Below are positions 24,813-40,540 of a DNA stretch of 64,000 nucleotides, piece after piece. Source of the DNA: Botryllus schlosseri (Eukaryota); NCBI GenBank assembly GCA_051294905.1, contig CM119380.1, positions 21,886,001 to 21,950,000 of the forward strand, given 5' to 3'. Every line of letters starts with the position of its first letter. Positions within the stretch are counted from its first letter, which is position 1. The position numbers and the translations under genes are program-made. Below the pieces are notes generated by a model, which made no database searches, was not told the origin of the DNA, and worked only from the letters and a program-made list of their open reading frames with translations.

Positions 24813-25623
24813 TTGTATTATTATGAATTCGAAATACTACAATAATTCTGATGGTGTGAAGAGGAAGGATGGAGTCTACAACCTGGTGAAGTCAATCAAA
24901 CTCCACCTTGGCCTATAGTGTAAAAAATGGAACGTGTTTGGTTAGAGAGGCATATGCAGTCAATGAGAAATCATATATGCATCATCAAAAATGCGTAGGC
25001 GATATAGAGGCATGCAACAACTCTGGGTATAGGCGAAGTCGGTGTGTAAAAATCGATCCTGTAATCTCAATACGCAGGCTATAGTATTTATCCAGAAGAA
25101 ATTGCTTGTTTAGACTTGAAGGTGGTCATTACTCATTACTATAGGGAGTCCATGATGGCCTGAGCGCTGAAGGGTGTATTTATAGACCAGACCAAATGCC
25201 CATATCAAGGATACCCATTCGATAAGTGTGCGAAGATAATAATTTATTGGGCTCCGTTTTCGTTTTTGTCGTGTTTTGGCCCGTGGAACTTGATATAATA
25301 TACCTGCTAACGCTATAGGCTATAGTTCTATAAACATTAGATTGACATGCTCAAGGTTGTCGAGGAATGATGATAGCTCCTATATTAATGTGTAATGATA
25401 CATGACAGATTTACCATAGCTGGAGTTTATAGAAATGTTTTGGCTTCAATATTTTGATATTCATGGAGATCTTTGTTTTGGAAGTATCAGGGAAGAGAAA
25501 TGGTGATTCTTGTCCATTCTGAAATGGATAATGATAATCACAGGGGCAGCAAGAGGGTAAGTTGAAAAGTCCTAATTGTGTAACTTCTAAATGTTCCAAT
25601 ATTATTTCCTCGTATCGTATCAG

Positions 25624-28600
25624 GGATTATTCAAGTGGATACCAAGTCGAGCTCGAAATTCTCCGCCAAACCGAAGGTCGTCCAGAGTGAAAGACAGTTT
25701 ACCTACCGAGAGGCGCCCTCTGCGTTCTGTACCAGTTGTTGGACCGGATTGCAGAGTGGAACCGGAGAGACTAGTTGCCGAATATGTCGAAAAGGAAGCT
25801 GCGGTAAAAATTATTGTCAGCGTACATTAAAAAAAATTATAGGACTGCTATTCTGATACTAACTTCACTTCTAGGCCACCAAGACATATATTACCATGTA
25901 AAATCTTATTAGTGATAGAGACCTTGGTAAATTATCCGACACTAGGCCAGGCTGTCGTGTCATATACCATTGTATTTGATTACCAGTGAACTCGGCACTT
26001 GGTGAATTCGGCCGGACAAACTCGGCACTTGGTGAACTCGGCACTTGGTGAATTCGGCCATTGGTGAATTCGGCCATTGGTGAACTCGGCCCTCGGGAAA
26101 TTTTGTAATAAAAATGCATTAAATATATATATCAGATAATGAAGAATCACGTGCCGTGGTAGATCGCGTAGCGGTAACGGTCACCATGATTGGTTACTGG
26201 AATGTTTGCCGGTGAACTCGGCACTAATCTTGAGATACCCCAACCCACCTCCAATCCCCCTTTTCCCCAACCGTAATATCCCCCTCTCACAACCCTAATA
26301 TACCCCTATCCCCAACCCTAATCTTGGGATACCCAACCCCGACTTTGACCCTAACCCACCTCCAATCCCCCATTCTCTAACCCCAATCTCCCACTAACTC
26401 CCTACCCCGCCTCTCCCAACCCTAATCTTGGGATACCCTAACCAACCGCCAATCCCCCTTTCCCCAAACCCTAATATCCCCCAACCCTAATATCCCTCTT
26501 TCCCCCAAAACTAACACCCCCTTCCCAACCCTAATATCCCCCTTTCCCCCACCCTAATACCCCCACCCCAACCCTAATATCCGTCTCTCCAAAGGCACAA
26601 AAAAAAAACAATATATTTTGACGTATAAATTTTTGTTCGTGTTCGTGGGAAACATTTATTGGTGATCCTTTAAAACTTCGTTATTACATCAGAGATCCAT
26701 CTTCTCAAAAGTCGTACGTCCGTCCCTCGCCAAGTCAAATCAACACTGAGCCGACCACGCGTGGTCGATATGTGAACGTCGCGTTATCTCCCGCGCTTGC
26801 GCAATCCGTGATCACATGATCTAATCACGACGTGACTGCGTGATCTACATATGCCCTGACCTCCTTACAAGATTGACGAATCACTTGATAATACTATTAT
26901 TAGTTTAATAATTCATATTAATAGCTGTTAATACACTTTAAATTCATATTCATAGTTGTTAATACACTTTATTACAAAATTTCCCGATGGCCGAATTCAC
27001 CAAGTGCCGAGTTTGTCCGGCCAAATTCACCAAGTGCCGAGTTCACTGGCAACCTTGTATTTAATTGCTTCATTGATCATTTGCTACCATCGTTTAATTT
27101 TTCTTCTATTTTTTTTTACTACCGTAACATTTTTTACAGCCAGACTGTTTAGAGTCAAGTGTACCTGTTTGATGCTGGTGTGATCAGACTAGATGACCTT
27201 CACGGTCTTATCGATCATTCCTATCTAATACCGAATGCTGTGCACGCATATTTTCTGTACCACCATCACTGCCGTTTGTTAGGTATTTTGGTTGGATGAA
27301 AATAAAGACTCTCTCTCTCTCTCTCTCTAATCGGTGTCTTGTGAAGGGCTCCACTCATTTTTTATTCAGGCTTCAAAGCCGGTATTGCTGAATCATGTTA
27401 GGATCTTCATCTTTAGACCTATCGACTGTATTACCCTGACAGTGATATTCTGATATTTTCTTTTAGCTGTTCGGTACTGTTCCAAACATTGAGACCAAGT
27501 TTGATGCTACCGACAGAGCTGCCTTATTGAAAATATTAGATGAACAGCAGGTATGTTTGGCATGTATGTTAAGTATAGTGCACTATAGCGCACGCGCCAG
27601 TTTCATGAAAGTATCAGAATTTTTAGGCACTGTTATGCATACCTAGAGGATTGACTGCCCCCATATAAGATGCAGGCTACGTTAGGGTTGTTAAAAAAAC
27701 TTTTTCTTCAGATTTCACTGGCTGCTTGATAAAATTGTTAGGTTTGTTAAAAAGAACGCTGCACACCAACTTTGGCTCAATTCCAACCAGTAGAAGCGAG
27801 GTTCTTGCAGTAGAAAGTTTTCAATTTATCATTAAAACATAGAAAAAAAAATTCAAAATTTTTCTGTCGACCCCATAAAATTGTTAGGCTGTCGGTAGAG
27901 ATGATCCACACCAAATTTGGTTCAATTCCAACCACTAGAAGCGAAGTTATTGCAGTAGAAAAATTTGGATTAGAATAAAATAGTATTTGCGGTGGCTACT
28001 CTTTAATTATTTATTATAAAATCATAGAATTAGAAATTTTTCTACTGCAATAACTTCGCTTCTAGTGGTTGAAATTGAGCCAAATTTGGTGTGCATCTTC
28101 TCTACTGACAGCGTAACAATTTTATGGGATCGACAGAAAAATTTTACAATTTTATTTTTATATTTTTTAATGATAAATTCAGAACTTTCTAAACTGCAAG
28201 AATCTTGCTTCTACTGGTTGAAATTGAGCCAAAGTTGGTATGCAGCGTTTTTTTCACCAATCTAACAATTTTATCAAGTAGCAAGTGAAATCTGAAGGAA
28301 AAGTTTTTTTTTTCAACAGCCCTAATGTACGTCTTATCCCTTATACATAAGAATAACGTTTTTTTTAATACTCCCTTGTACCCCAGCTTTTAACAGCTAT
28401 CCACATACAATGCATGTGGTAGCTTTGTACTCAATTCATAATAAGAACCAGAATACAAAACCTGGGTAATTCGATTGTGAATCGAGTATTGGGCTTCAAG
28501 TCAGTCGAGTATTTGAGTATCACTCGTTATGATGTCATAGCAGTATGAATGTCGCATTTTCTAGCTTTGGCAGTATGCCTGACTGCCTGTAGCACCTACA

Positions 28601-31600
28601 CCCAGCTAACTTTCCTGGCTTAAAGTTCGTCCATTTGTGCAAATTTCATCGGTAAAATCGTTTCAGAATGTTGCATTCTAAATACGCAACGATTTGTTAC
28701 ACGTTTTCAGACATCTCTAACTGTAACCTTGATAGCCTATTTGCTGGCATACACATAACCATGGTAACAAGTGCATTTTTTCCGTCTTCAGGCAGTGGGA
28801 CAGTTAAAAAGCCATCTCTTTCATGATGACGATATTATCATTACGTTTTCTGTACACAATATCAAACTCTTGCGCAGAGACGGTAAGTAGCCTAATTGAT
28901 ATTTGCCGAGTCTTTTGTCAAGCGCGATAACCAATCCTATCCGGTCCAGGTGAAAAACTTATCCAAAGAATCGTTACTCATAAAATCGCCGCTGTAGGCT
29001 ATGTCCGTGACGACCAACAGCACATTGTATTCATCAAATTCGGTAAGAGTAAATATCATTTTGTAACCGTTAATTAAACGTGATTGGTGAGACTTAATGA
29101 CAGCCTTTGATGATTCAGGTTTCGAGGTATGATTATTGTGTTTTCATAAATTTCTGGTAGTGCACCTATTCCTGAGCGTTTGTCATCACCAACTTTGTGT
29201 ATCAGCATGATGAACTCCCCGATGTATGTGTTATGCAATTTTGTCTCTTTGATTAACCGTGATTAAGGACATAGTCAATAAGACATTCATTACTGCAATG
29301 GCCCATCCTCAAGTACCAATACATTTACAAGAAATTATAGCTCCTGATGTTGTTTTTACCACCCATGATATTGCTGGTTTGCATTGCGGTATATATTATG
29401 AAACTTGATACCATGTAATATACTATAGTCTGGTACATTTTATTATATATTTATGCATATACCTTTCATTCATTTTACAGCTTCAGAGACAAACCCAAAG
29501 ATGTGCAACTTGACTTTACTCAATTGCAAGAGTAAGGTAGGTCTATGGAAATTCTAACTTGAAATTCTAACTGAATCAAACAGGCTGTATTCAACTTTGA
29601 GCGATGATATTCAGTGACAGTAAATGTAGTTGATAGTGCAATCTTCGAAGTATGTTATTCATCAAGATTTTTGAAATTAGTGATGGATAAGAGGAATATG
29701 ATTTTAGCTTGAATCACAGAAGATTGATGGTATATACATTTTATAGCACTAGTACACTTATCACTTATCTATGAGTCAATTGTTATTTTATTGCTTCTCT
29801 AAGAATTCCTTCACTATGTTCTAGCCCTTTGATGAGGCTTTTTGCCCATTCAGGTGCAACGAAGCATGTCGAAATGGGGATATTTATAAGAGGTTTAACC
29901 AGTAAACAATACTGTAGTAATGGTGGATGTTTCGTCACAGTCTTGTGGCTATATAAAGAAGCGTTTCTATATTCTCCAGCCATATCCTATTTCGTCGGCG
30001 TACCTGAACAAGCTAGTGTGCTGCCCTGTTTTCCAAATCGTATGACAAACACTTATGATAGGCTGCCTGTTAAAAACGTTTTGTCAAGTTTGTTGCAATT
30101 GATATACTTTTGAATCCTTGAAATAAATTGCACTTGTGACATAATATGACAACATGGATAAATTTAATTACAACAAACAAAAATCCATGGTCATCTGTTT
30201 GTCTTGGTATTTAATAGAATCATCTTTAGTGGGACTGGGTAATCTTGCCCTTGCCTGGATGTATGTGTCACACTTTTAGGCTAATAATCAAGCGGTACAC
30301 AACTGTTGAGCAAACGTTTTCCGTTTGTAGGACGCCGCAGAAGAAGTTTGCTCCTTGGCCCGCCAAATATTCCAGCTGGTGTACACTGACTCGGCGATTG
30401 ACTTTCTTGACAAATCCATCATGGTCGGTGCTATTACTCCAAAAAATCATTCTTACAGTACCGGTGAGATTTTACGTCTTTTGTATACTGGTAGTTGGCA
30501 GTATACAGTATCTTGGTGTTCTTTTGTTTCCTGTTTTCTTTTGCCCTTTTATTTAATTGAAAGTCGATATATATATATAGTTGGCAGCGTTGAATCAGAA
30601 AGTGCTCTTGATTTTTATCACTTTTCTTTTTGACCGACTTCCTGGACTAGTTGCATTTCAACTTGCACAGTTTTGCAGCTGGATCACTGTATGCCTTTTT
30701 GGATTTTCCCCGAGTCCATCAAGATTGTATATATATATATTCTTTTATCACTACATCCATCGCAAGGATACATATATTATAACTCGAAGACCTTTCAGGT
30801 GCTGTTATCAAGAGTTATCGGCGCACCAAAGCTATATGAAATTATTAGGCAAAATATGACGCTCGGTTATAGGCGCCGAAAAGTCTTGCAATAAATGTAT
30901 TCTCGCAATCTATGTTTTGATGAAAGCAGCATTCAAGTACTGTACCATAAACCAGCTATCTAACATTCATATTTGCTATCAGAACTTTGGTACCGGCACA
31001 CCTATCCCTAATACACTTGTAGGGTCTCGATCGAGTAATCTTAAAACTGTTTGCGCCATCGTGAAACAGTTGCTCCCTGTCTTGCAAATCGCTGCCGTTT
31101 CGTCAGCCTTTGATGCTCGATTGTTCATTTATTTGTTTATTTTTTAGACGATTCTGAAAAAAGAGATCCTGTCACTGTAATAACTGACGACAACACCGAA
31201 GAGTAAGTGCTCCTAGTCTCAAAACTTGAAGTTCTGCACCTCGAAGAGTGTCTGTGAAAATTGAAGTTTTCTGCTCATTTAGGCAAAGACGTAAAAGCAC
31301 AGAGTCACTACCTACCTCAAACAGCGCAAACAGACACGGAACTTCCAATACAGACGTTCGATTTCGGCCCAGCACCGGTCAACTGTACGCGCTGCCGAAA
31401 TTACTATGAACGTTCCCCAATTACATTGCACGCATGATTTGCAGCTCCGAGATGCGTCCTAGGTCCAGCTCGACCTTGCCGATCATGTCGCGAACGCACC
31501 GGCGTTCCGGTAGCAGCGGTTCTTCCGGCACCAACCCGGTTCCGTCCTCGAGCTCGATTCATTTGAGAAGTCCGACAAGCTCCGCGAAACGCACAGGGGC

Positions 31601-34600
31601 GCAAGCGGAGTTCCAAATCCCGGACTATCTGGCTGTTGTAAGTTTGCTGTAGGCTATGACCGGGGACTTGACATGAATATCTGTATGGGGTTTCTTGTCA
31701 GCAAAATTTGCAACCGAAGGAAGATGTGGAAACGACCAAGTATGGTAAAGTAGTCGTAAAGTAGAAGTAAGTGTTCTAGGCTTAGTTTTGCCTGAAATTA
31801 AATCTGGTAATTAGATGTATCCTTAAATCAAAACCACATGAGTTTGAGTATGCATTGCAACTATTTGAGTACCGTAATTTTCCATGTATAATGCACAAAA
31901 TTTTCACGATTTTTTGCCCTAAAATAGGGGGGTGCGTATTATACATGGGTACAACAAGCCTTGAAAAAAATCTCCCTCGATAAAAAACTTGAAATCACAC
32001 CTATCATGTTTGTTTCCAATCGCGCATCACTTTCAGCCAGCGCGCGTAGTAATTCGTATTATAGAGTGTAACGCTGCCAATTACTGGGAAGCGTGTTGCC
32101 AATTAACAAGAGTCACGCGATCTCCTGCTGAGTTGGTTTGCCATTTGTACTCGAGCGAAATTAGATCACTAATAGACACTCGCGCGCGGCAATTCTCGCC
32201 AATTCATCGCGTCAACGACAGGCCCGAACAATCGCATATGCAATTTATACATATACAAGAGGCCATGTGCGCTAGATATAATCGCTTGCGTAATCACTAA
32301 TCAGTCGCATCTCCAACAGACCTGTTGCGCATGACATAACCGTTAGCCTAGGCGCAATCGCATCTGTAATAGGCATCGGGCGAAAGATGTCGGTTCGTTG
32401 GCCTAAACTAACTCGCAGCCGGCCTCACAGGCTTTGGCTGCTATCTACTATCGTTTAGAGACAATACCGTTAATTGTATAATGATTAGCTATCGCATCTG
32501 TAAAAGGTCTCCTAGTGCTCAAGATGTCGTGTCGCTCGCCTGAACTATCGCGCCGCTTGCCTCGCAGGCTTTGGCTGCTATCTACTATCGTTTAAAGACA
32601 ATCCCGCTAATTGTCTAATGATTAGCGATCGTTGTGTAATGATTGTTCAAGAGTGACATCGCAAAACAGAATGACATCGTGTACGAAATCGGAACTATTC
32701 CTGTACTGAAATGCAGGGTGCGTACTATACATGGGTACAGGCTTTTTCCCAGAATTTACATGCTATTTAGGGGTGCGTATTATACATGGGGGCGTACTAT
32801 ACTTGGAAAATTACGGTACTTCTAAAAAGTAGAAATAGGCTACTTTGTCACCGAACATCCCTGTTCTCAATCCTATATCTACCTTAACCGACTGGTATTA
32901 ATGCCCAACGTAGCAGTGTCCAATCTTGATGTTTCTTTTGGCGCTGCTTCGCGCTTTTCATTCATCGAGTGATCTTTCTATAGGATTTTTTGTAAAGTTA
33001 GGAACAGCGGCACACGTGACGAGGTTAGAGTTGGTCAGAGTAGTCTACGTTTCTGCTCGAATAGAAGTAATGTCGCAAATTTCTACTCGGGTACAAGTAG
33101 AAGTAGTAATCTAAAATGATAACCACCTTAGGAAGTAGTGAAAGTAAGCATAACTTTCTTGAGAACTTCAAAAAAAGGGAGGTACTTTGCTACTGAGTTC
33201 CACTGCCAACACTTTGAAACTATCGGCAGCCCGGATTCGAGCCGCGGTCTCTCGTGCCAATGGCGGTGGTACTAGCCCTGACCGTCCGCGTCAACTCTTT
33301 AGTCCTTGTTTGTAAAGCTTGTGCTGAGGACCTGCGCCATTTCAGCTTCAAAAGGAATTTACCCGCAATGAACTGCGCGAGTTCGCCGACCTGTTGCAGC
33401 AGTTTCGAATGGGAACGCTGACTATACGCGATCTGTCGGTTAAACTCTGGGAGCTGTACACCGACACCCGGAAGCATTTGCTGCTTGGTGGGTTTGCCTT
33501 CTTCGATTTCACCAGGTTGCTTTATGAAGTTGCCAGTGAATCTGGTACTTAGTGTATTCGACCAGGTTGTAACTAAGACGCAAGGTTCCGAGTCACAAGT
33601 CAATCTCATTTTTATAGTTTTGACTCGAGTCAAGTCCGAGTCCAAGTCTGCTAATAAAGGGTCGAGTCTGAATCAAAGTGTTTTGACTCGAGTCCGAGTC
33701 ATTATGCTCACAGGTCAGTTTTCAGTTCAATTTGCTTCAACCCACTTTTTCAACTCTGCTCAAATGATAGAATGGCTCGGCATTCATAATATTGTAATTT
33801 TCCTCAGTCTTAGCAGTTTCTGGCCAATTTTTTTAGGATCAGGACTGATAGACGAGGCGCCCGTAGTGTGGTGCCTTTACTATTCTTCGGAGTTACAATG
33901 AAATGTCTGTCTTGGCCATCCTAGTCTCGAGTCATGTGATTTGGTTCGACTCGTGCACAATGACTCAGTACAAGTCGAGTCAATACAAAAATTGACTCAA
34001 GTCAGGTCGTTTTACGTATTCGAAAAAATCACCATCCTGGAATTCGGCACTTGAATTTGACATCAGAATTACAACTAACATAATGATGCGATGCATTGGA
34101 TGCATCGATATTGCATTAATGAATTCGAAATTGAATGTTTCACTTGACATGAGCTTGAGTTGTGATAGTACGGCACTTGGTGAATTTGGAATTAGAAATG
34201 CAATAACTAAATTATAACTATATACAAAATTCATCAATATTGTAGCACTAAATTTAAAAATGAATGATTCGTTGAATATGAGCGTGAATTGCGATATACA
34301 GCACTTGGTGAATTTTGCAAGTTGAATTTAGCGATAGAAATAGAATAGCCATTATTATTATTATCATGAAAGCGTTTCATCAATATCTAATTTCAAAATG
34401 AATATGAGTGTGAATTGTGTATCAATGTGTTCGTGTTAGGATTAGCTGTCAAGTGCCGAATTGACGGATAACCCCTAACGGTGATTTTTCTACGTCAGGC
34501 ATGCGGCACTTCATCCCAAACCCGACCGACTTGTCATACTTTGACCAATTTTTGAAAGACCATCAAGCCGATCAGAGCTCTTCGGATTCTGCCTCGTACG

Positions 34601-37600
34601 GGTGCGTTTGAGATTAGGTTACGCGTGTTTGGCTATGGGTAACGCGTTTGAATTTTTAAGATGGTGGACAGAGGCGCCGCGTGTCTCGAGCTCGGCGCAA
34701 TCGGAAGACGGCAGCGTTTCTACCGGGGCACATGTAACCGGTAAGGCCCACGCTTTCACTAGTATCTGCCGTTAATATTTTCCCTGGTGTTCTGCCTTGG
34801 TTTGTGACGTATAGTTGAGAAAAAAGGTGGTTAGTTTTTTAATGATAACATGGCGTCACTGATACTCCGTGACATAGTAAGAACATATAATTTCACAATA
34901 TCCTAGTCGATTTGCACATCCTGTCGACTCAGACAGGTGGGTGTGGGGCTAGATTTAGATTTTTGTTGTTGATTGATTGTATATAGGTTAGGTATTCCGG
35001 GGGAATAAGCCTTAATCCTACGAATTGCAGCTAGCCCTCTCTTATGTTTACAATTGAATAGTATATTCATATTAAATGAACCCGAAGATTTTCGGCTGGC
35101 ACTCGTCAGGGGTAATCGTCAGCAACTAGTAGAGAATTGGAAAGAACATTGTATATCGACAATCGTATCACGAAATATGACGTCACCGGCATGAAATGAA
35201 ATCTCAAATAAGAGAGCGTTCAATGTACTATTTTAAAATGGTACACGTCACACGAACTCATTTTGTAGACAAAGCTTGGGCTGATGTATTTTCATAAAGG
35301 TCGTCCCCAAGGCACACAGGTCAAAGTGTGAGCGGTGCCTCCCAATGAGGCGAAATTGGTCGTCTCGATAATTTTTTTCACAAGCGAGATTGCCCTACAG
35401 ATGTTCACCAATGGCAGAATTTATGGCCTTTGAATGTCGCTTAGCCTCAAGCTTGAGCGGATGAGTTAGGGGTGAGCTTTTCACCGGGCCAAGCTTTGCC
35501 TACAAAAGGAGTTCGTGTACCATCTTATTTGAGATCTCATTTCATGCTGGTGACATAATATTTCGTGACACGATTGTTGATATACAATGTTCTTTCCAAT
35601 TCTCTACTAGTTACTGATGATTATCCCTGACGAGTGTCAGCCAAAAATATTCGTGTTCATTTCAATATGAATATACTATTCAAATGTATATTGAAGCTCT
35701 GCACCTCCAAGAAGCTCTTAACTTTACATAAACTGAGTTCTCGTTGAAGCGAATCAATAGTGATTCTTTTGTTGCAAGGCTGCTTGGTGTTCATATGGTA
35801 GTAATGTAATCTATTAGTTTCTTCATATTCTTTGTCGTCGTTCCGAGATATCGGTGGAACAATATCAACTACAAAACAATCAAGCCATGTATTATAGCCT
35901 ATTGTTATTTGTTAACGAAAATATCAATGGGCATTGTGTGGGAGACGAGCCACCTCCGTCATTCTTGATGAGAATGGCCAACTTTTTCCAATTACGAACG
36001 AGTGATATGGAATCGCGTCAAAGCAAACGGCAAGCATCGGTTGTGTTATAGACCTCTCGTCGAGCGAATCCGAACACACTCTAACTCCTCCTGTCCTGCC
36101 GTACAAAGACGGCGGGATATTTGACAATTTTGTGATGAGCTCCTATGCCAGACCGAGGCCAACGAAATCCGGTAAGGGCTGCTTGGCACGTCCACTAACA
36201 CCCGCGTGTCTTGCGAGATGTCCCAAAAATAACTTGATTCATGCCTATCCTTTTGTGCTCTACTCTTGCTATGTCTCTTGGCGCAATCTACATACTGGTT
36301 ACTGGGACGATTTGAGTGGAGTGTGCATTGTAACGATGGATTAGAGTAGGTTCGATTTCTACGAGTATGGTAAAAAAAGAGTCGCCTTCACAAACAGGGT
36401 AATATTCATTTAATCAACGGCAAATGTAGTTTCAATACTACGGTCGAACCATCGAAACCTTGGCTGTCCGTGGTTCAGCATCGCTAAAACACGTCGCACA
36501 GGGCTACGAATGTTCATGCAACGACATTTTTGTCCAGTAGGGGTCGACCCTCAAAATGGTAAAAAGCACTACGAAATATCTGGGTTTAGAAATAAGAAAT
36601 TTATTTTGAATGGTGTGTAACTGGCAACATTTTGATTTCGGTCAGATATATATTTGAACTTTTCAAGATATTATTGGTGTTGTTTTTTCATAATACGTGG
36701 TACTCGAATACTTGACTCAATTCGGAATCATCTAGTTACCAGTACTCCATTTTGCCCAGCCCTCTTGGTTAGAAACCACAGAGTGTGCATCTTGTAATAG
36801 CTGTTTTTTGATGGTGGTTAAATTTCTTCTTCCATGTTGGCCGTTGGGTGCCCACACCCATAACAGCTCAATGCTCTATTTTCCGTGTTTCCGTGCTCTA
36901 CAGATTAATTTGAATCTTTCGAAGCATTTTTCATCTGCTATCGGGCATTCTTTCGCAAGGCTAGCCCTTAACGCTGTTTGCCTCGATTTTTCAGCGAACG
37001 GAACACCACCAAGACGGGCTTTTCACCTTATTGACTCGCCGTTCGTTGATGAGCCATCTTATTCCGCACTTCATGTAACTTCGGTGGCTGCTGTTCCATC
37101 AGGTTTTGGAGATACGTCCAACGATTCAGGTAGGCAAGATTGACTGCCGCTCTGTCGGTAGTGCGGGTGAGGTGGTCAGTAACAAAGTGGAGTACTAGAG
37201 TAGGTTTAGCCTACTTGTACTACTTACTCAAGTGGGTATGTTTTCGGCAGAACTACCTACCATTTTGATAGTGTATACTTATGCTTGAATTGAGCAGATA
37301 TTTATGACGTTACTTGTAGTTGAGTGGCAAATCTGACTACTTCGGCCACCACTGGTGCCGTTTTAAGCGATTGTTCTTTTTATTCAGATTCAGAGACGAA
37401 TGTAAGCAGGACTTCAAGCGCAAAGATGGTATGTTGACAATGTTGGTCTAACAGGCGTCCACATACTTCGGCAAACCGAGTGACTGCCTCAAAGTCTGTC
37501 TCATCCCTAATACGACGATAACACCACTTACAACTTCATTACCACGTGTTTGAGTATGTGAGAACCATGCTGACGGCTCTCAACTTGTCCTGGCGATACA

Positions 37601-38356
37601 AAATTTTATCTGTAGTAGTCATCATCCAGATGTTTCCAAAAGTTATAATTGGGGCGATTTTTTGTCATGTCAAAAAAAAGGTCAAAATTGTAGCGTTAGG
37701 TCAAAAAATTACCGTAATACGTGGGGTAGGGCCAGATTCGTACAGACAGTTCGAACCAGAAATGAAGATAAGTACTACAATTCTAACATTATATGGGAAA
37801 ACACCTAATTTGCATACGTTGGGTCAAAATCAAGTTTTTTGAGGTAAAAAAAAGTCAAAATGTTGATTTTTAGGTCAAAATCTTCCGTTTTTTAGGTCAA
37901 AAAAATCGCCCTAGTTATAACATTTGTGATGACACCAGGGTTACCATATTTTGGACATATCCTCCTAAAAGAGGACGTATGTTAACCCTATATGACACCC
38001 ATTCATGTTCCATTGACTGAATCAGGATTACCGGGTCCAATGAAAATAACTCGTTAGTGGCAATCCTAGATTGAAAGATCAACCTCTCACCGACCGCTTA
38101 CAATATCCAAATGCTAGTCGAGTAGCAGACCGTTTGTGTATTCTAATCCTAGACGCCATCAAAGGACGACACAAACGTGCGACAGCGAAGGCAAGGTAAA
38201 GAAAGGCGGAAATCAGAGCTGTCTTCGAACGAGTCCAAAAGGCCATCATCAGAACACTTCGCAATGCCACCTCTTCAGGATTTTGATGTCAGGCAACAAA
38301 AGGAGCATAGAAAAAAGAAGAAACACAAGAGGGACTCGATTACTGTCGCATTATGA
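25624..38356 (+). CDS. CCM2: CCM2/malcavernin orthologue (PTB domain, harmonin-homology domain, long C-terminal tail); first coding exon uncertain (24745-24765 or 24823-24885)
   Basis: Exons 25624-25803, 27467-27550, 28792-28882, 28950-29042, 29481-29536, 30331-30463, 31148-31202, 31283-31384, 31445-31637, 33346-33487, 34499-34601, 34661-34740, 36052-36171, 36995-37129, 37388-37428, 38153-38356, all phase-consistent. Peptides [96 protein letters not shown] match recalled human CCM2 (TERRPLHTV, HDIAAVSYVRDD, VYTESTIDFLDRAI, LRPFIP). Confidence 0.93.
25978..27054. mobile_element. Foldback DNA transposon with long repeat-built TIRs and an internal CCCTAA-rich array
   Basis: Inverted arms of (GTGAACTCGGCACTTG)n, perfect 8-bp TSD TTGTATTT, internal degenerate CCAACCCTAAT repeats at 26230-26580. 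Confidence 0.88.
27063..27328 (+). mobile_element. Retroposon 3' end with AATAAA and (CT)n tail
   Basis: An inverted copy lies at 22933-23056 plus 23535-23670, where the SINE and gap interrupt it. Confidence 0.75.
27683..28324. mobile_element. hAT-type palindromic MITE (family A)
   Basis: TAGGGTTGTT..AACAGCCCTA ends, long internal palindrome, degenerate TSD (GGCTACGT/ATGTACGT). Confidence 0.8.
31870..32818. mobile_element. Family C TA-flanked element, second copy in opposite orientation
   Basis: TACCGTAATTTTCC / GGAAAATTACGGTA ends, internal sequence is the reverse complement of 16127-16967. Confidence 0.85.
33563..33982. mobile_element. GACTCGAGTC-rich hAT-type MITE (family D)
   Basis: Colinear with 39426-39965. 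A short copy at 54287-54405 has TIRs and a TSD. Confidence 0.75.
35051..35686. mobile_element. TA-flanked foldback MITE with arms of about 220 bp
   Basis: 35051-35285 is the inverted copy of 35482-35686 (CAATTGAATAGTATATTCATATT / AATATGAATATACTATTCAAATG). Confidence 0.85.
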
Positions 38357-38658
38357 TGTTATTGAAGATACTCCGTCCGCATCGTGCATGCTACAAACGA
38401 ATTGACCCACTAACCACGTAGCCTGACTAGAATACTTTTTTTTCAACTAGAATGGCGCTTCCCATGTTCCTGGTAACTATCTAATTCAAGGATGTGCTGC
38501 TAGTACCAGTCAACAAGAAACCATTCTATGATATTTTTATGTATTGGTTCATGTGTTACTATATTTAATATTTCGAGCCGCTATAGAATAGCTCTTTGGT
38601 GCTCTATTATACTACTTTCTGCATGTCCGACAATGCCTTTTCTATCCAACAAGTTCTT

Positions 38659-40540
38659 TCAAACTGCATTTGTTCCTTGTACGGATGCGGCGGGCAGCAC
38701 CTTGGATTGAGGGTTATGGCTAATGGCAGTTTCAAGTATGTGATTGAAGCGGCTGCACACTTCTTGCGCCATCTCCTGCAAAACGAATCGGGGTCATGCC
38801 GCTGTTAAGATCGCCCGTCTGTGATGCGCTCATGCTCACCTTATTTCCGCATTGGTAGGCGTGGATGTCATATGGTCCATCAGGAGACGCAGTTGCCCGG
38901 ATGCATTTTACTGCCAGCATGGTATTACCGAATATTCCGTCGTCAAATATGACCAACCTCTCTATCAGGTGGATAGGTACACGATATATCACTGGCTGAT
39001 GTGAAGAAATGTATTGAAAGCAGTTATGTGACATGAACAAGTAATATCTTACACCATTATTGCATTTAGTAAGCTTAATCCCGTGGACAGTGAGCGACAT
39101 GATCGCCTCTTCGTTCACATACAGGGGAAGTTCATTTTCTTGCTGGTAAAAATCAAATGTAAGTAAAAGGTGCATGACGCAAATAACTTTCAGTGCCTTA
39201 CCTGAGCTATGTCGATCAGGTTGATCACATCCAACGGCCCGCTTCCGAGACCGCATATATTCTCAATGCAGCCGACAATTCGAACACGAAAATCTGCCTC
39301 ATTTGCCTCGGGAGGCAAAACTAAAATGGTAACAGACTTATTGCAAGTGAAGTATTCATGATTGTAATGGTTACGATTGTGGCTGGTCACGTAATGATGC
39401 CAGATAGGCTAGCTAGTATGTAGGCCAGGGTTGTAACCAAGTCGCAAGGTTTCAAGTCACAAGTCAATCTCACTTTTATAGTTTTGACTCGAGTCATTTT
39501 CAATTCACCACCGAGTCAAGTCCGACTACAAGTCAACGAACAGAGGCTCGAGTCTGAGTCATGGTATTATGACTCGAGTTGAGTCCAAGTCATTGTGTTG
39601 ACTGACCAGTTTCCAGTTTAAGTCTTGCTAAATCCACTTTCTGTAATTCTGTTTGGTGATATCGAATGGCTCGCATTCTTAATATACTAATTTTCCTCAT
39701 TTTTAGCAGTTTCTGGTCGCGTTTTCAAGTACCAGTACCAATAGACGAAATCCCAATAGTGTGGTTTCTTAACTATTCCTCGAAATTACAATGAAATGTC
39801 GGTGTTGGCCGTCTGCGTCTCGAGTCATATGACTTGGTTCGAGTCCAAGTCGAGTCAATACACAGATTGACTCGAGTCGAGTCATTTCCGTATTTTGACA
39901 AAATGACTCGAGTCAAGTCGAGTCATCATAAAATCGTGACTCGAGTCATCACCATTTCGTCACTGTGGATCGAGTATCTTATGAAATCAAAATTTTGTAA
40001 GATTTTCTTTCGGCCTTATTTTGGCCACAATGTGACAAACGTAATCGTGGCCAAGATAACGCCGAAAGAAAATGAGAATCTTACAATAACTTGATTTTTT
40101 CATATATGTATAAAATGGATATAAAAATCACGACATTGCAATACGGTGGAGATACATTTGTAGGAACCAACTACTAAAGTAGGCCTTGTCATTCATCCGT
40201 TAATTCAGATTTTAGTTAGCAAGTTAGGCTGAACGCGAAAGGATGTTGACAGAATACTATATCATGCTAATGCAAACGCACCTGAACTTTGAATTGATGA
40301 TAAACTACCACCTCTCCCTGAATTTGCTTCGGGGCTTGATAGGGTGCTAGACTTGGATAAACCGTCTATCGAGTCCAAGTCTAGTGACTAAAGAAAATAG
40401 GTGTTGAGTCTTAGTAATAATACATTAGGCCCAAATCCATATTCCCCACGAACCTTGCTCTTCGAGCTTCCTTGACTTCTTAGAGATAGCTCGCTACCGT
40501 CAGCACTAAGCTGTGCCACCTTGGTTTGTCGTCGTAACAT
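38659..40540 (-). CDS. ITGB1BP1: Integrin beta-1-binding protein 1 (ICAP1) orthologue, 224 aa, Ser-rich N-terminus plus PTB domain
   Basis: Exons 40540-40454, 40387-40282, 39320-39202, 39142-39053, 38995-38840, 38775-38659 (675 nt, all GT-AG, phases consistent). MLRRQTK..SKSK|SLDLDSIDGLSKSST, ADFRVRIVGCIE..GPLDVINLIDIAQ|QENELP, IERLVIFDDGIFGNTMLAVK, AYQCGNK|EMAQEVC match recalled human ICAP1 (AEFRIKYVGAIE, GPLDLINYIDVAQQDGKLP, RMVCYDDGLG). Confidence 0.93.
39426..39965. mobile_element. Family D MITE in an ICAP1 intron
   Basis: Starts CAGGGTTGTAACCAAGTC, many GACTCGAGTC motifs. Confidence 0.75.

Follow-up and report, generated by a model that had tools for sequence, protein, structure and literature searches.

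Do introns at matching places in two neighboring genes show that the genes are copies of one another? The question is raised by a 64,000-nt stretch of the Botryllus schlosseri genome (C10:21886001-21950000, here called the window), in which a CCM2 gene on the + strand and an ICAP1 gene on the - strand lie convergent, tail to tail, with 302 nt between their stop codons. KRIT1 is the hub of the cerebral cavernous malformation complex, and CCM2 and ICAP1 dock on neighboring NPxY/F motifs in it; if the two are sister genes, the complex expanded by copying one adaptor. The original prediction for this locus held that the pair arose by ancient tandem duplication, that shared introns mark the two genes as sisters, and that the CCM2 intron at 28883-28949 is the ancestral homolog of the middle intron of ICAP1, lost elsewhere. 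We arrive at a different joint reading, which we consider likely: CCM2 and ICAP1 orthologs lie tail to tail and have PTB domains that are each other's nearest relatives, their introns are mostly family-wide, and the intron at 28883-28949 (x1) is a tunicate gain.

Identity and structure of the two genes

The window carries single-copy orthologs of CCM2 (malcavernin) and ICAP1 (ITGB1BP1), ordinary members of known genes; the genome searched comprises 495 Mb in 219 contigs. Spliced CCM2 from the window aligns to the CCM2 profile at an hhalign probability of 100% (E 4e-55), its exons B and E have human malcavernin (4WJ7) as their sole PDB match, and the exon of the harmonin-homology domain (33343-33489) scores 32 bits on Pfam CCM2_C (PF16545; cut-off 27.3). 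The ICAP1 exons match PF10480 and the human ICAP1 structures 4DX8 and 4DX9. Taken singly they score 18-23 bits each on PF10480, collinear with model positions 60-176, and the full-length ascidian ICAP1 orthologs P0001 and P0003 reach 80 and 92 bits, respectively; a PF10480 search over the complete genome gave no candidates, such short exons falling below its first filter. The best-matching named protein for the ICAP1 stretch is the integrin beta-1-binding protein 1-like protein of Styela clava (51% identity); over the same query stretch identity is 64% to P0001 and 51% to P0003. On exon-bearing reading frames of the window, the A2 profile reaches 142, 70 and 36 bits, and the ascidian ICAP1 profile matches human ICAP1 at 1.8e-25 across the entire PTB domain. 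Judged solely by orthology, CCM2 here is a predicted binder of the KRIT1 NPxY/F motifs, and ICAP1 a predicted binder of the integrin beta-1 tail and of the first NPxY motif of KRIT1.

The exons and the introns named in the text are the following, with the basis of each assignment in brackets where it was noted:

25500-25800 (approximate), +, CCM2 5' coding exons: start-codon region ~25500-25556 and second exon ~25624-25800, ending VEKEA (tblastn with P0004)
27467-27550, +, CCM2 PTB exon A, 84 nt, ends in phase 0; equals human exon 3 (translation)
28792-28882, +, CCM2 PTB exon B, 91 nt, ends in phase 1 within the Gly codon of RRDG (translation; 4WJ7 match)
28883-28949, +, CCM2 intron x1, 67 nt, GT..AG, so far seen in Botryllus schlosseri only
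28950-29042, +, CCM2 PTB exon C, 93 nt, ends in phase 1 at intron c (translation)
29481-29536, +, CCM2 PTB exon D, 56 nt, ends in phase 0 at intron d, before the C-terminal helix (translation)
30331-30463, +, CCM2 PTB exon E, C-terminal helix, 133 nt (translation; protein 90% identical to Styela)
33343-33489, +, CCM2 exon of the harmonin-homology domain (Pfam CCM2_C, tblastn)
~34498-34596, 34662-34742, 36985-37134 and 38165-38356, +, remaining CCM2 exons, with an ascidian-specific extension (tblastn with P0004)
38354-38356, +, CCM2 stop codon TGA
38659-38775, -, ICAP1 last exon (38662-38775; C-terminal helix, EMAQEVC...) and stop codon (38659-38661) (translation)
38840-38995, -, ICAP1 PTB exon, 156 nt, from intron x0 (phase 0) to intron d (phase 0)
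39053-39142, -, ICAP1 PTB middle exon, 90 nt, from intron b (phase 0) to x0 (phase 0)
39202-39320, -, ICAP1 first PTB exon, 119 nt, phase 1 at its start and phase 0 at its end, which follows DIAQ
40283-40540, -, N-terminal exons of ICAP1 with its start codon (40540); the inner boundary is approximate (tblastn with P0001)

Two phase-0 introns flank exon A of CCM2, a before LFG/YLG and b after DEQQ. All three ICAP1 PTB introns are in phase 0, and every PTB splice site of both genes reads GT..AG. Translation reproduced all the peptides and boundaries quoted in the original prediction, and the exon junctions are read through by the transcript-derived ascidian proteins P0001 (ICAP1) and P0004 (CCM2), which were derived from Logan contigs of 0.95 and 2.5 kb. 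RNA reads span the CCM2 junction from exon C to exon D (29042 to 29481; four reads), and no read spans the junction of the 67-nt CCM2 intron in a sparse sample of ~6% of each run. Placed on the CCM2 model (predicted local distance difference test, pLDDT, 81.7), intron a falls in strand beta-1, b in the final turn of helix alpha-1, x1 in an inter-strand turn, c at a strand end, and d at the first residue of the C-terminal helix. The ICAP1 intron at 38996-39052 (-) is 57 nt long, in frame and without stop codons; if retained, it would add 19 residues in a turn of the PTB domain and leave the frame intact.

Two introns of the PTB domains are equivalent and the middle ones are not

We aligned a profile of 20 CCM2 PTB domains with one of five ascidian ICAP1 proteins (hhalign probability 96.6%, E 6.3e-10, 122 columns). 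With a slash marking the intron, b of CCM2 (DEQQ/TLELLP) stands opposite b of ICAP1 (DIAQ/QENELP), and d of CCM2 (ASK/TAAEE) opposite d of ICAP1 (ENK/EMAQE), all in phase 0. The two phase-0 introns that had been called equivalent thus coincide, and they do so in the hhalign alignment, in the coordinates of the ICAP-1 Pfam model, where exon-wise scans put an exon boundary at 96/97 for both Styela ICAP1 and amphioxus CCM2, and under two MAFFT modes, each of which places b and d in one column. By our own arithmetic, the chance that at least two of three ICAP1 introns fall on the five CCM2 sites among ~366 positions is P ~6e-4, and the coincidence is therefore real. We read introns b and d as inherited rather than as chance gains.

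The middle introns are another matter. Between the conserved anchors IKL and H both proteins have 14 residues, without a gap; within that stretch x0 of ICAP1 follows the sixth residue in phase 0, and x1 of CCM2 lies inside the fifth codon in phase 1. The CCM2 intron, which the original prediction had put at about the site of an ICAP1 intron, is thus not at that site but 5 nt upstream of it and in another phase, and the middle introns are non-equivalent. The middle exons do measure 90 nt in ICAP1 and 91 nt in CCM2, as predicted; their similar lengths stem from a two-residue indel earlier in the exon.

Most of the introns recur in other PTB genes of the same genome

A six-frame search of the genome with the PID model led to other PTB genes, and the 20 kb around six of these were read for GT..AG exons. 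The introns found in them are as follows:

ANKS1: phase-0 intron before YLG (equals CCM2 a); phase-0 intron before HEIAEHEIHNISF (column of ICAP1 x0); phase-0 intron before DVAYEIILTLGQAF (column of d)
NOS1AP-like gene: intron a; phase-0 intron where helix alpha-1 ends; phase-1 intron with the x1 spacing from strand beta-5; intron d
Numb: intron a; phase-0 intron following helix alpha-1; pre-helix intron, displaced from d by two codons in the downstream direction
GULP-like gene: pre-helix intron at the position found in Numb, two codons downstream of d
Shc-like gene: intron a

The identities of ANKS1 and Numb were checked against the PDB (AIDA-1 structures at 5e-15, and 1e-32, respectively); the name of the NOS1AP-like gene is tentative, given for an apparent likeness to the human sequence and a PID match, and an Atlas search with its exon gave no match. 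As counted in the automated alignments, CCM2 and ICAP1 share two introns (b, d), CCM2 and ANKS1 two (a, d), and ICAP1 and ANKS1 two (x0, d). Since the counts are equal, intron sharing does not mark out CCM2 and ICAP1. Nor are the shared introns exclusive to the pair, for d is also present in ANKS1 and the NOS1AP-like gene, in the same column and phase, and b alone is exact for the pair and no other gene. The use of intron positions as a mark of kinship, on which the original prediction depended, has largely to be given up on that prediction's own terms, which named recurrence of the positions in many unrelated PTB families as refuting it: d and the other old introns of CCM2 and ICAP1 are mostly heirlooms of the entire PID family and no sister mark. 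Intron b may be special to CCM2 and ICAP1.

Two features of these genes deserve mention in their own right. The intron pattern of the NOS1AP-like gene (C16:1762038-1769914), with a, a near-b, an intron with the spacing and phase of x1, and d, is that of ascidian CCM2, though the two proteins are only distantly alike. In the Shc-like gene (C2:8104931-8110220), two PTB exons, one starting before QFIANHQ and the other before YITACHV, lack an AG acceptor in the open frame that precedes them; these may be non-canonical introns or assembly errors, and both starts were excluded from the intron map.

The PTB domains of CCM2 and ICAP1 are nearest relatives

Evidence independent of the introns was found in sequence profiles, structures and a tree. 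Run against all PDB sequences, the CCM2 profile finds CCM2, then ICAP1 (6.7e-5), then GULP1 (0.004) and no further PTB domain, and the ICAP1 profile finds ICAP1, then CCM2 (1.5e-4) and no further one. Amphioxus CCM2 scores 37.4 bits on PF10480 (cut-off 25) versus 19.8 on PID. Within the Botryllus genome, CCM2 and ICAP1 match each other at 32 bits in blastp and 96.8% in hhalign, and other PID domains reach at most 18 bits and 49%. When the CCM2 model was compared by Foldseek with Swiss-Prot models, CCM2 and CCM2L were followed by ICAP1 (2e-9, 21% identity), above ANKS1A, GULP1, CAPON, SHC1, LDLRAP1 and DAB2; in the PDB, ICAP1 came second (2.6e-9), above GULP1 (8.5e-8). For the Atlas model of Styela ICAP1, CCM2 is the closest other family (TM 0.80). 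The AlphaFold model of ICAP1, with a pLDDT of 36.7 from five aligned sequences, was kept out of the fold searches. When PF10480 was excluded from a feature search of the Atlas, other PID families were listed but CCM2 was not, and the filter may itself remove CCM2 clusters. Finally, in an unrooted maximum-likelihood tree of 19 PTB domains, CCM2 and ICAP1 are split from six other PID domains with a support of 99/98.

The two PTB domains are reciprocal nearest relatives by both sequence and structure, and we conclude that they are probably sister paralogs. This part of the original prediction stands on the profiles, the structures and the tree; the introns do not serve as proof of it. As the two domains are nearest relatives within the Dab-like PID superfamily, descent from one ancestral adaptor gene is most likely. 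On this view a single ancestral adaptor gene would have given rise to both CCM2 and ICAP1, both of which inherited b, where helix alpha-1 ends, and d, where the C-terminal helix begins, and x1 would have been inserted in CCM2 in the tunicate lineage, near but not at the intron of ICAP1.

The 67-nt intron of CCM2

Human CCM2 exons 3 and 4 measure 84 and 184 nt, and an alternative form of exon 4 that ends after 90 nt is reported (PMC6825194, Table 1). That the 184-nt exon is undivided in human, as the original prediction stated, was borne out (PMC6825194), and the same holds for Takifugu and amphioxus. Splicing of the annotated proteins exactly onto their loci gave CCM2 exons of 84, 184, 59 and 136 nt in amphioxus (B. 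floridae) and of 84, 184, 137 and 136 nt in Takifugu. Since 91 + 93 = 184, the intron at 28883-28949 is additional in this ascidian. Introns a, b, c and d are found in both amphioxus and Takifugu, with c kept in amphioxus and vertebrates, and x1 is missing in both of these species and in human. Ascidian exon D (56 nt) is the counterpart of vertebrate exon 5, whose 137 nt include a 27-residue insertion; the insertion explains the difference in size, and the pre-helix intron d is therefore conserved from ascidian to vertebrate. We had considered that human CCM2 might lack the pre-helix intron (56 versus 137 nt), an idea that was dropped in view of the vertebrate insertion and the same boundary in Takifugu.

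Tunicates are the sister group of vertebrates. With x1 missing in amphioxus, Takifugu and human, its retention would therefore need at least two losses, as against one gain. Furthermore, x0 and x1 lie 5 nt apart and are therefore not both ancestral, so at least one parallel insertion took place in this turn. We conclude that x1 was most likely gained by tunicates, within the beta-turn beside the intron site of ICAP1, rather than being, as had been proposed, an ancestral intron kept by this genome. The spliced codons GAC-GGT-GAA of CCM2 resemble a splice donor. The Styela locus ends short of the CCM2 PTB exons, and there is no signal of exons B to D in its last 2.1 kb.

As an observation on the side, the alternative end of human exon 4 (90 nt) is one base from the start of the ascidian intron (91 nt), and the conserved RDGE codons may be a latent splice donor in the human and ascidian lineages.

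Adjacency of the two genes

In Styela clava, ICAP1 and the CCM2_C gene also lie tail to tail on opposite strands, 2.7 kb apart. Within 10 kb on either side of amphioxus CCM2 there are two acyltransferase genes and no ICAP1, and in Takifugu XK-related, FAM167 and lebercilin genes lie beside CCM2, with no ICAP1 within 10 kb; the only match of the ICAP1 profile on the two loci is the 184-nt exon of CCM2 itself. The claim of an ancient tandem duplication is thus upheld in one respect, that the genes are immediate neighbors in two ascidians, and is unsupported in others, since the orientation is convergent rather than tandem and the amphioxus and Takifugu CCM2 loci have no ICAP1 within 10 kb. Immediate adjacency of reciprocal nearest paralogs is improbable by chance, and local duplication is therefore a fair hypothesis. 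A local (inverted) duplication, of inferred age, would fit the convergent pair that two ascidians have kept.

Weighing the alternatives

Several observations weigh against the joint reading. The exclusivity of b hinges on the placement of gaps, as the NOS1AP-like gene and Numb have phase-0 introns one to three codons off, at the same helix end. Tunicate and vertebrate CCM2 score slightly higher on PID than on the ICAP-1 model. The tree covers six other PID families only, without GULP, Dab, LDLRAP1 and EPS8, and since both CCM2 and ICAP1 are on long branches, long-branch attraction is possible in it. The ICAP1 sample consists of ascidians only (a search with Styela ICAP1 returned three ascidian proteins), and the presumed age of the ICAP1 introns b, x0 and d is drawn from the human isoform that lacks residues 128-177. 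Lastly, an intron of the NOS1AP-like gene on C16 matches x1 in phase and in distance from strand beta-5: it is in phase 1, and 11 residues and a split codon separate it from the conserved beta-5 Ile downstream, which is exactly the spacing of x1. This last match could suggest that x1 is an old intron of the PID domain, retained by tunicates only and held in common with the NOS1AP-like gene rather than with ICAP1. We find that unlikely. It would require separate losses in amphioxus and in vertebrates, and, because an exon is inserted in this loop of the NOS1AP-like gene, MAFFT puts the intron of that gene and x1 in different columns. Moreover, parallel gain does occur in this turn, since x0 and x1 were not both ancestral, and the site offers both the donor-like codons and, in human, the nearby alternative end of exon 4 after 90 nt (PMC6825194). 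The full scheme of the original prediction, in which the introns themselves mark an ancient tandem pair and x1 is the ancestral counterpart of x0, has in its favor the two exact phase-0 matches (P ~6e-4), the middle exons of 90 and 91 nt, the adjoining genes in two ascidians and the nearness of the two families. It nevertheless seems to us very unlikely, because d, a and x0 are common with ANKS1, the NOS1AP-like gene or Numb, CCM2 and ICAP1 share no more introns with each other than either does with ANKS1, x1 is out of register with x0 in both position and phase and would have had to be lost independently two or more times, the genes face each other, and CCM2 stands without ICAP1 within 10 kb in amphioxus and Takifugu.

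As to how the genes came to be neighbors, we tentatively suggest, at less than even confidence, that the ascidian tail-to-tail pair is the surviving original layout of a local (inverted) duplication that yielded both KRIT1-binding PTB adaptors, with b as a shared derived mark. The adjacency could instead be secondary, if tunicates joined the two genes by chance or because their converging 3' ends allow co-regulation, in which case it would be uninformative on their origin. Tunicate genomes are heavily rearranged, no such neighbors are seen within 10 kb in amphioxus or Takifugu, and human CCM2 and ICAP1 lie on separate chromosomes (7p13 and 2p25) and are not known to be tail to tail. This explanation appears doubtful to us nonetheless: by our estimate, two given genes become immediate neighbors with a chance of ~1 in 10,000, these neighbors happen also to be reciprocal nearest paralogs, and the layout has been kept between two ascidians in which ICAP1 is only 51% identical over the compared stretch.

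On balance, the KRIT1-binding adaptors look like sister paralogs that are kept tail to tail in ascidians. If this is true, the KRIT1 module, with its three NPxY/F motifs and two adaptors, arose through duplication of one adaptor gene, and sisterhood of the genes would provide a simple evolutionary frame for the several KRIT1 motifs and for the residues that set partner specificity. The introns add a caution, namely that positions common to two PTB genes are mostly family-wide heirlooms. In the literature that we searched we found no statement on the kinship of CCM2 and ICAP1 or on the ascidian pair; a PTB classification from 2005, outside that search, may imply the kinship.

Repeats in the introns

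The introns of both genes contain repeats. A dispersed repeat of ~470-510 bp is present in two copies, 81% identical and in the same orientation, at 33540-34010 in a CCM2 intron and at 39420-39930 in an ICAP1 intron; it is rich in GACTCGAGTC palindromes and resembles a family of non-autonomous transposons. Nested inverted repeats (27693-28310) lie in the CCM2 intron that follows exon A, with 133-nt arms that are 90% complementary, and outer arms; they are hairpin-forming and resemble miniature inverted-repeat transposable elements (MITEs), and among the RNA reads there is an "opposite strands" joint between 27907 and 28262. Another CCM2 intron has a MITE-like inverted repeat of 140 nt (35074-35213/35523-35662), 91% complementary, with its arms 309 nt apart.

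Comparison with known adaptors

Like human malcavernin (Q9BSQ5, 4WJ7), ascidian CCM2 has a PTB domain followed by a harmonin-homology domain, its model fits 4WJ7 with a root-mean-square deviation of 0.9 at 44% identity, and it has the PTB coding stretches of 84 and 184 nt and the introns a, b, c and d of human, Takifugu and amphioxus. It differs in that the 184-nt exon is cut by the 67-nt intron, in that the 27-residue insertion of vertebrate exon 5 is missing, and in having a C-terminal extension: P0004 is 683 aa long and the Styela protein was called at 697 aa, versus about 450 in vertebrates and amphioxus. The extension (34662-38356), which lies beyond the harmonin-homology domain, finishes in a Lys-rich tail. 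Like human ICAP1 (O14713; 4DX8, 4DX9, 4JIF), ascidian ICAP1 has a Ser-rich N-terminus and a PTB domain, but in its longest exon the identity to the human protein is ~35%. The other Dab-like PID genes of this genome (ANKS1, Numb and the NOS1AP-like, GULP-like and Shc-like genes) have the same fold and hold a, x0 (ANKS1) and d (ANKS1, NOS1AP-like) in common with CCM2 or ICAP1, but their similarity to these two adaptors is far weaker than that of the adaptors to each other.

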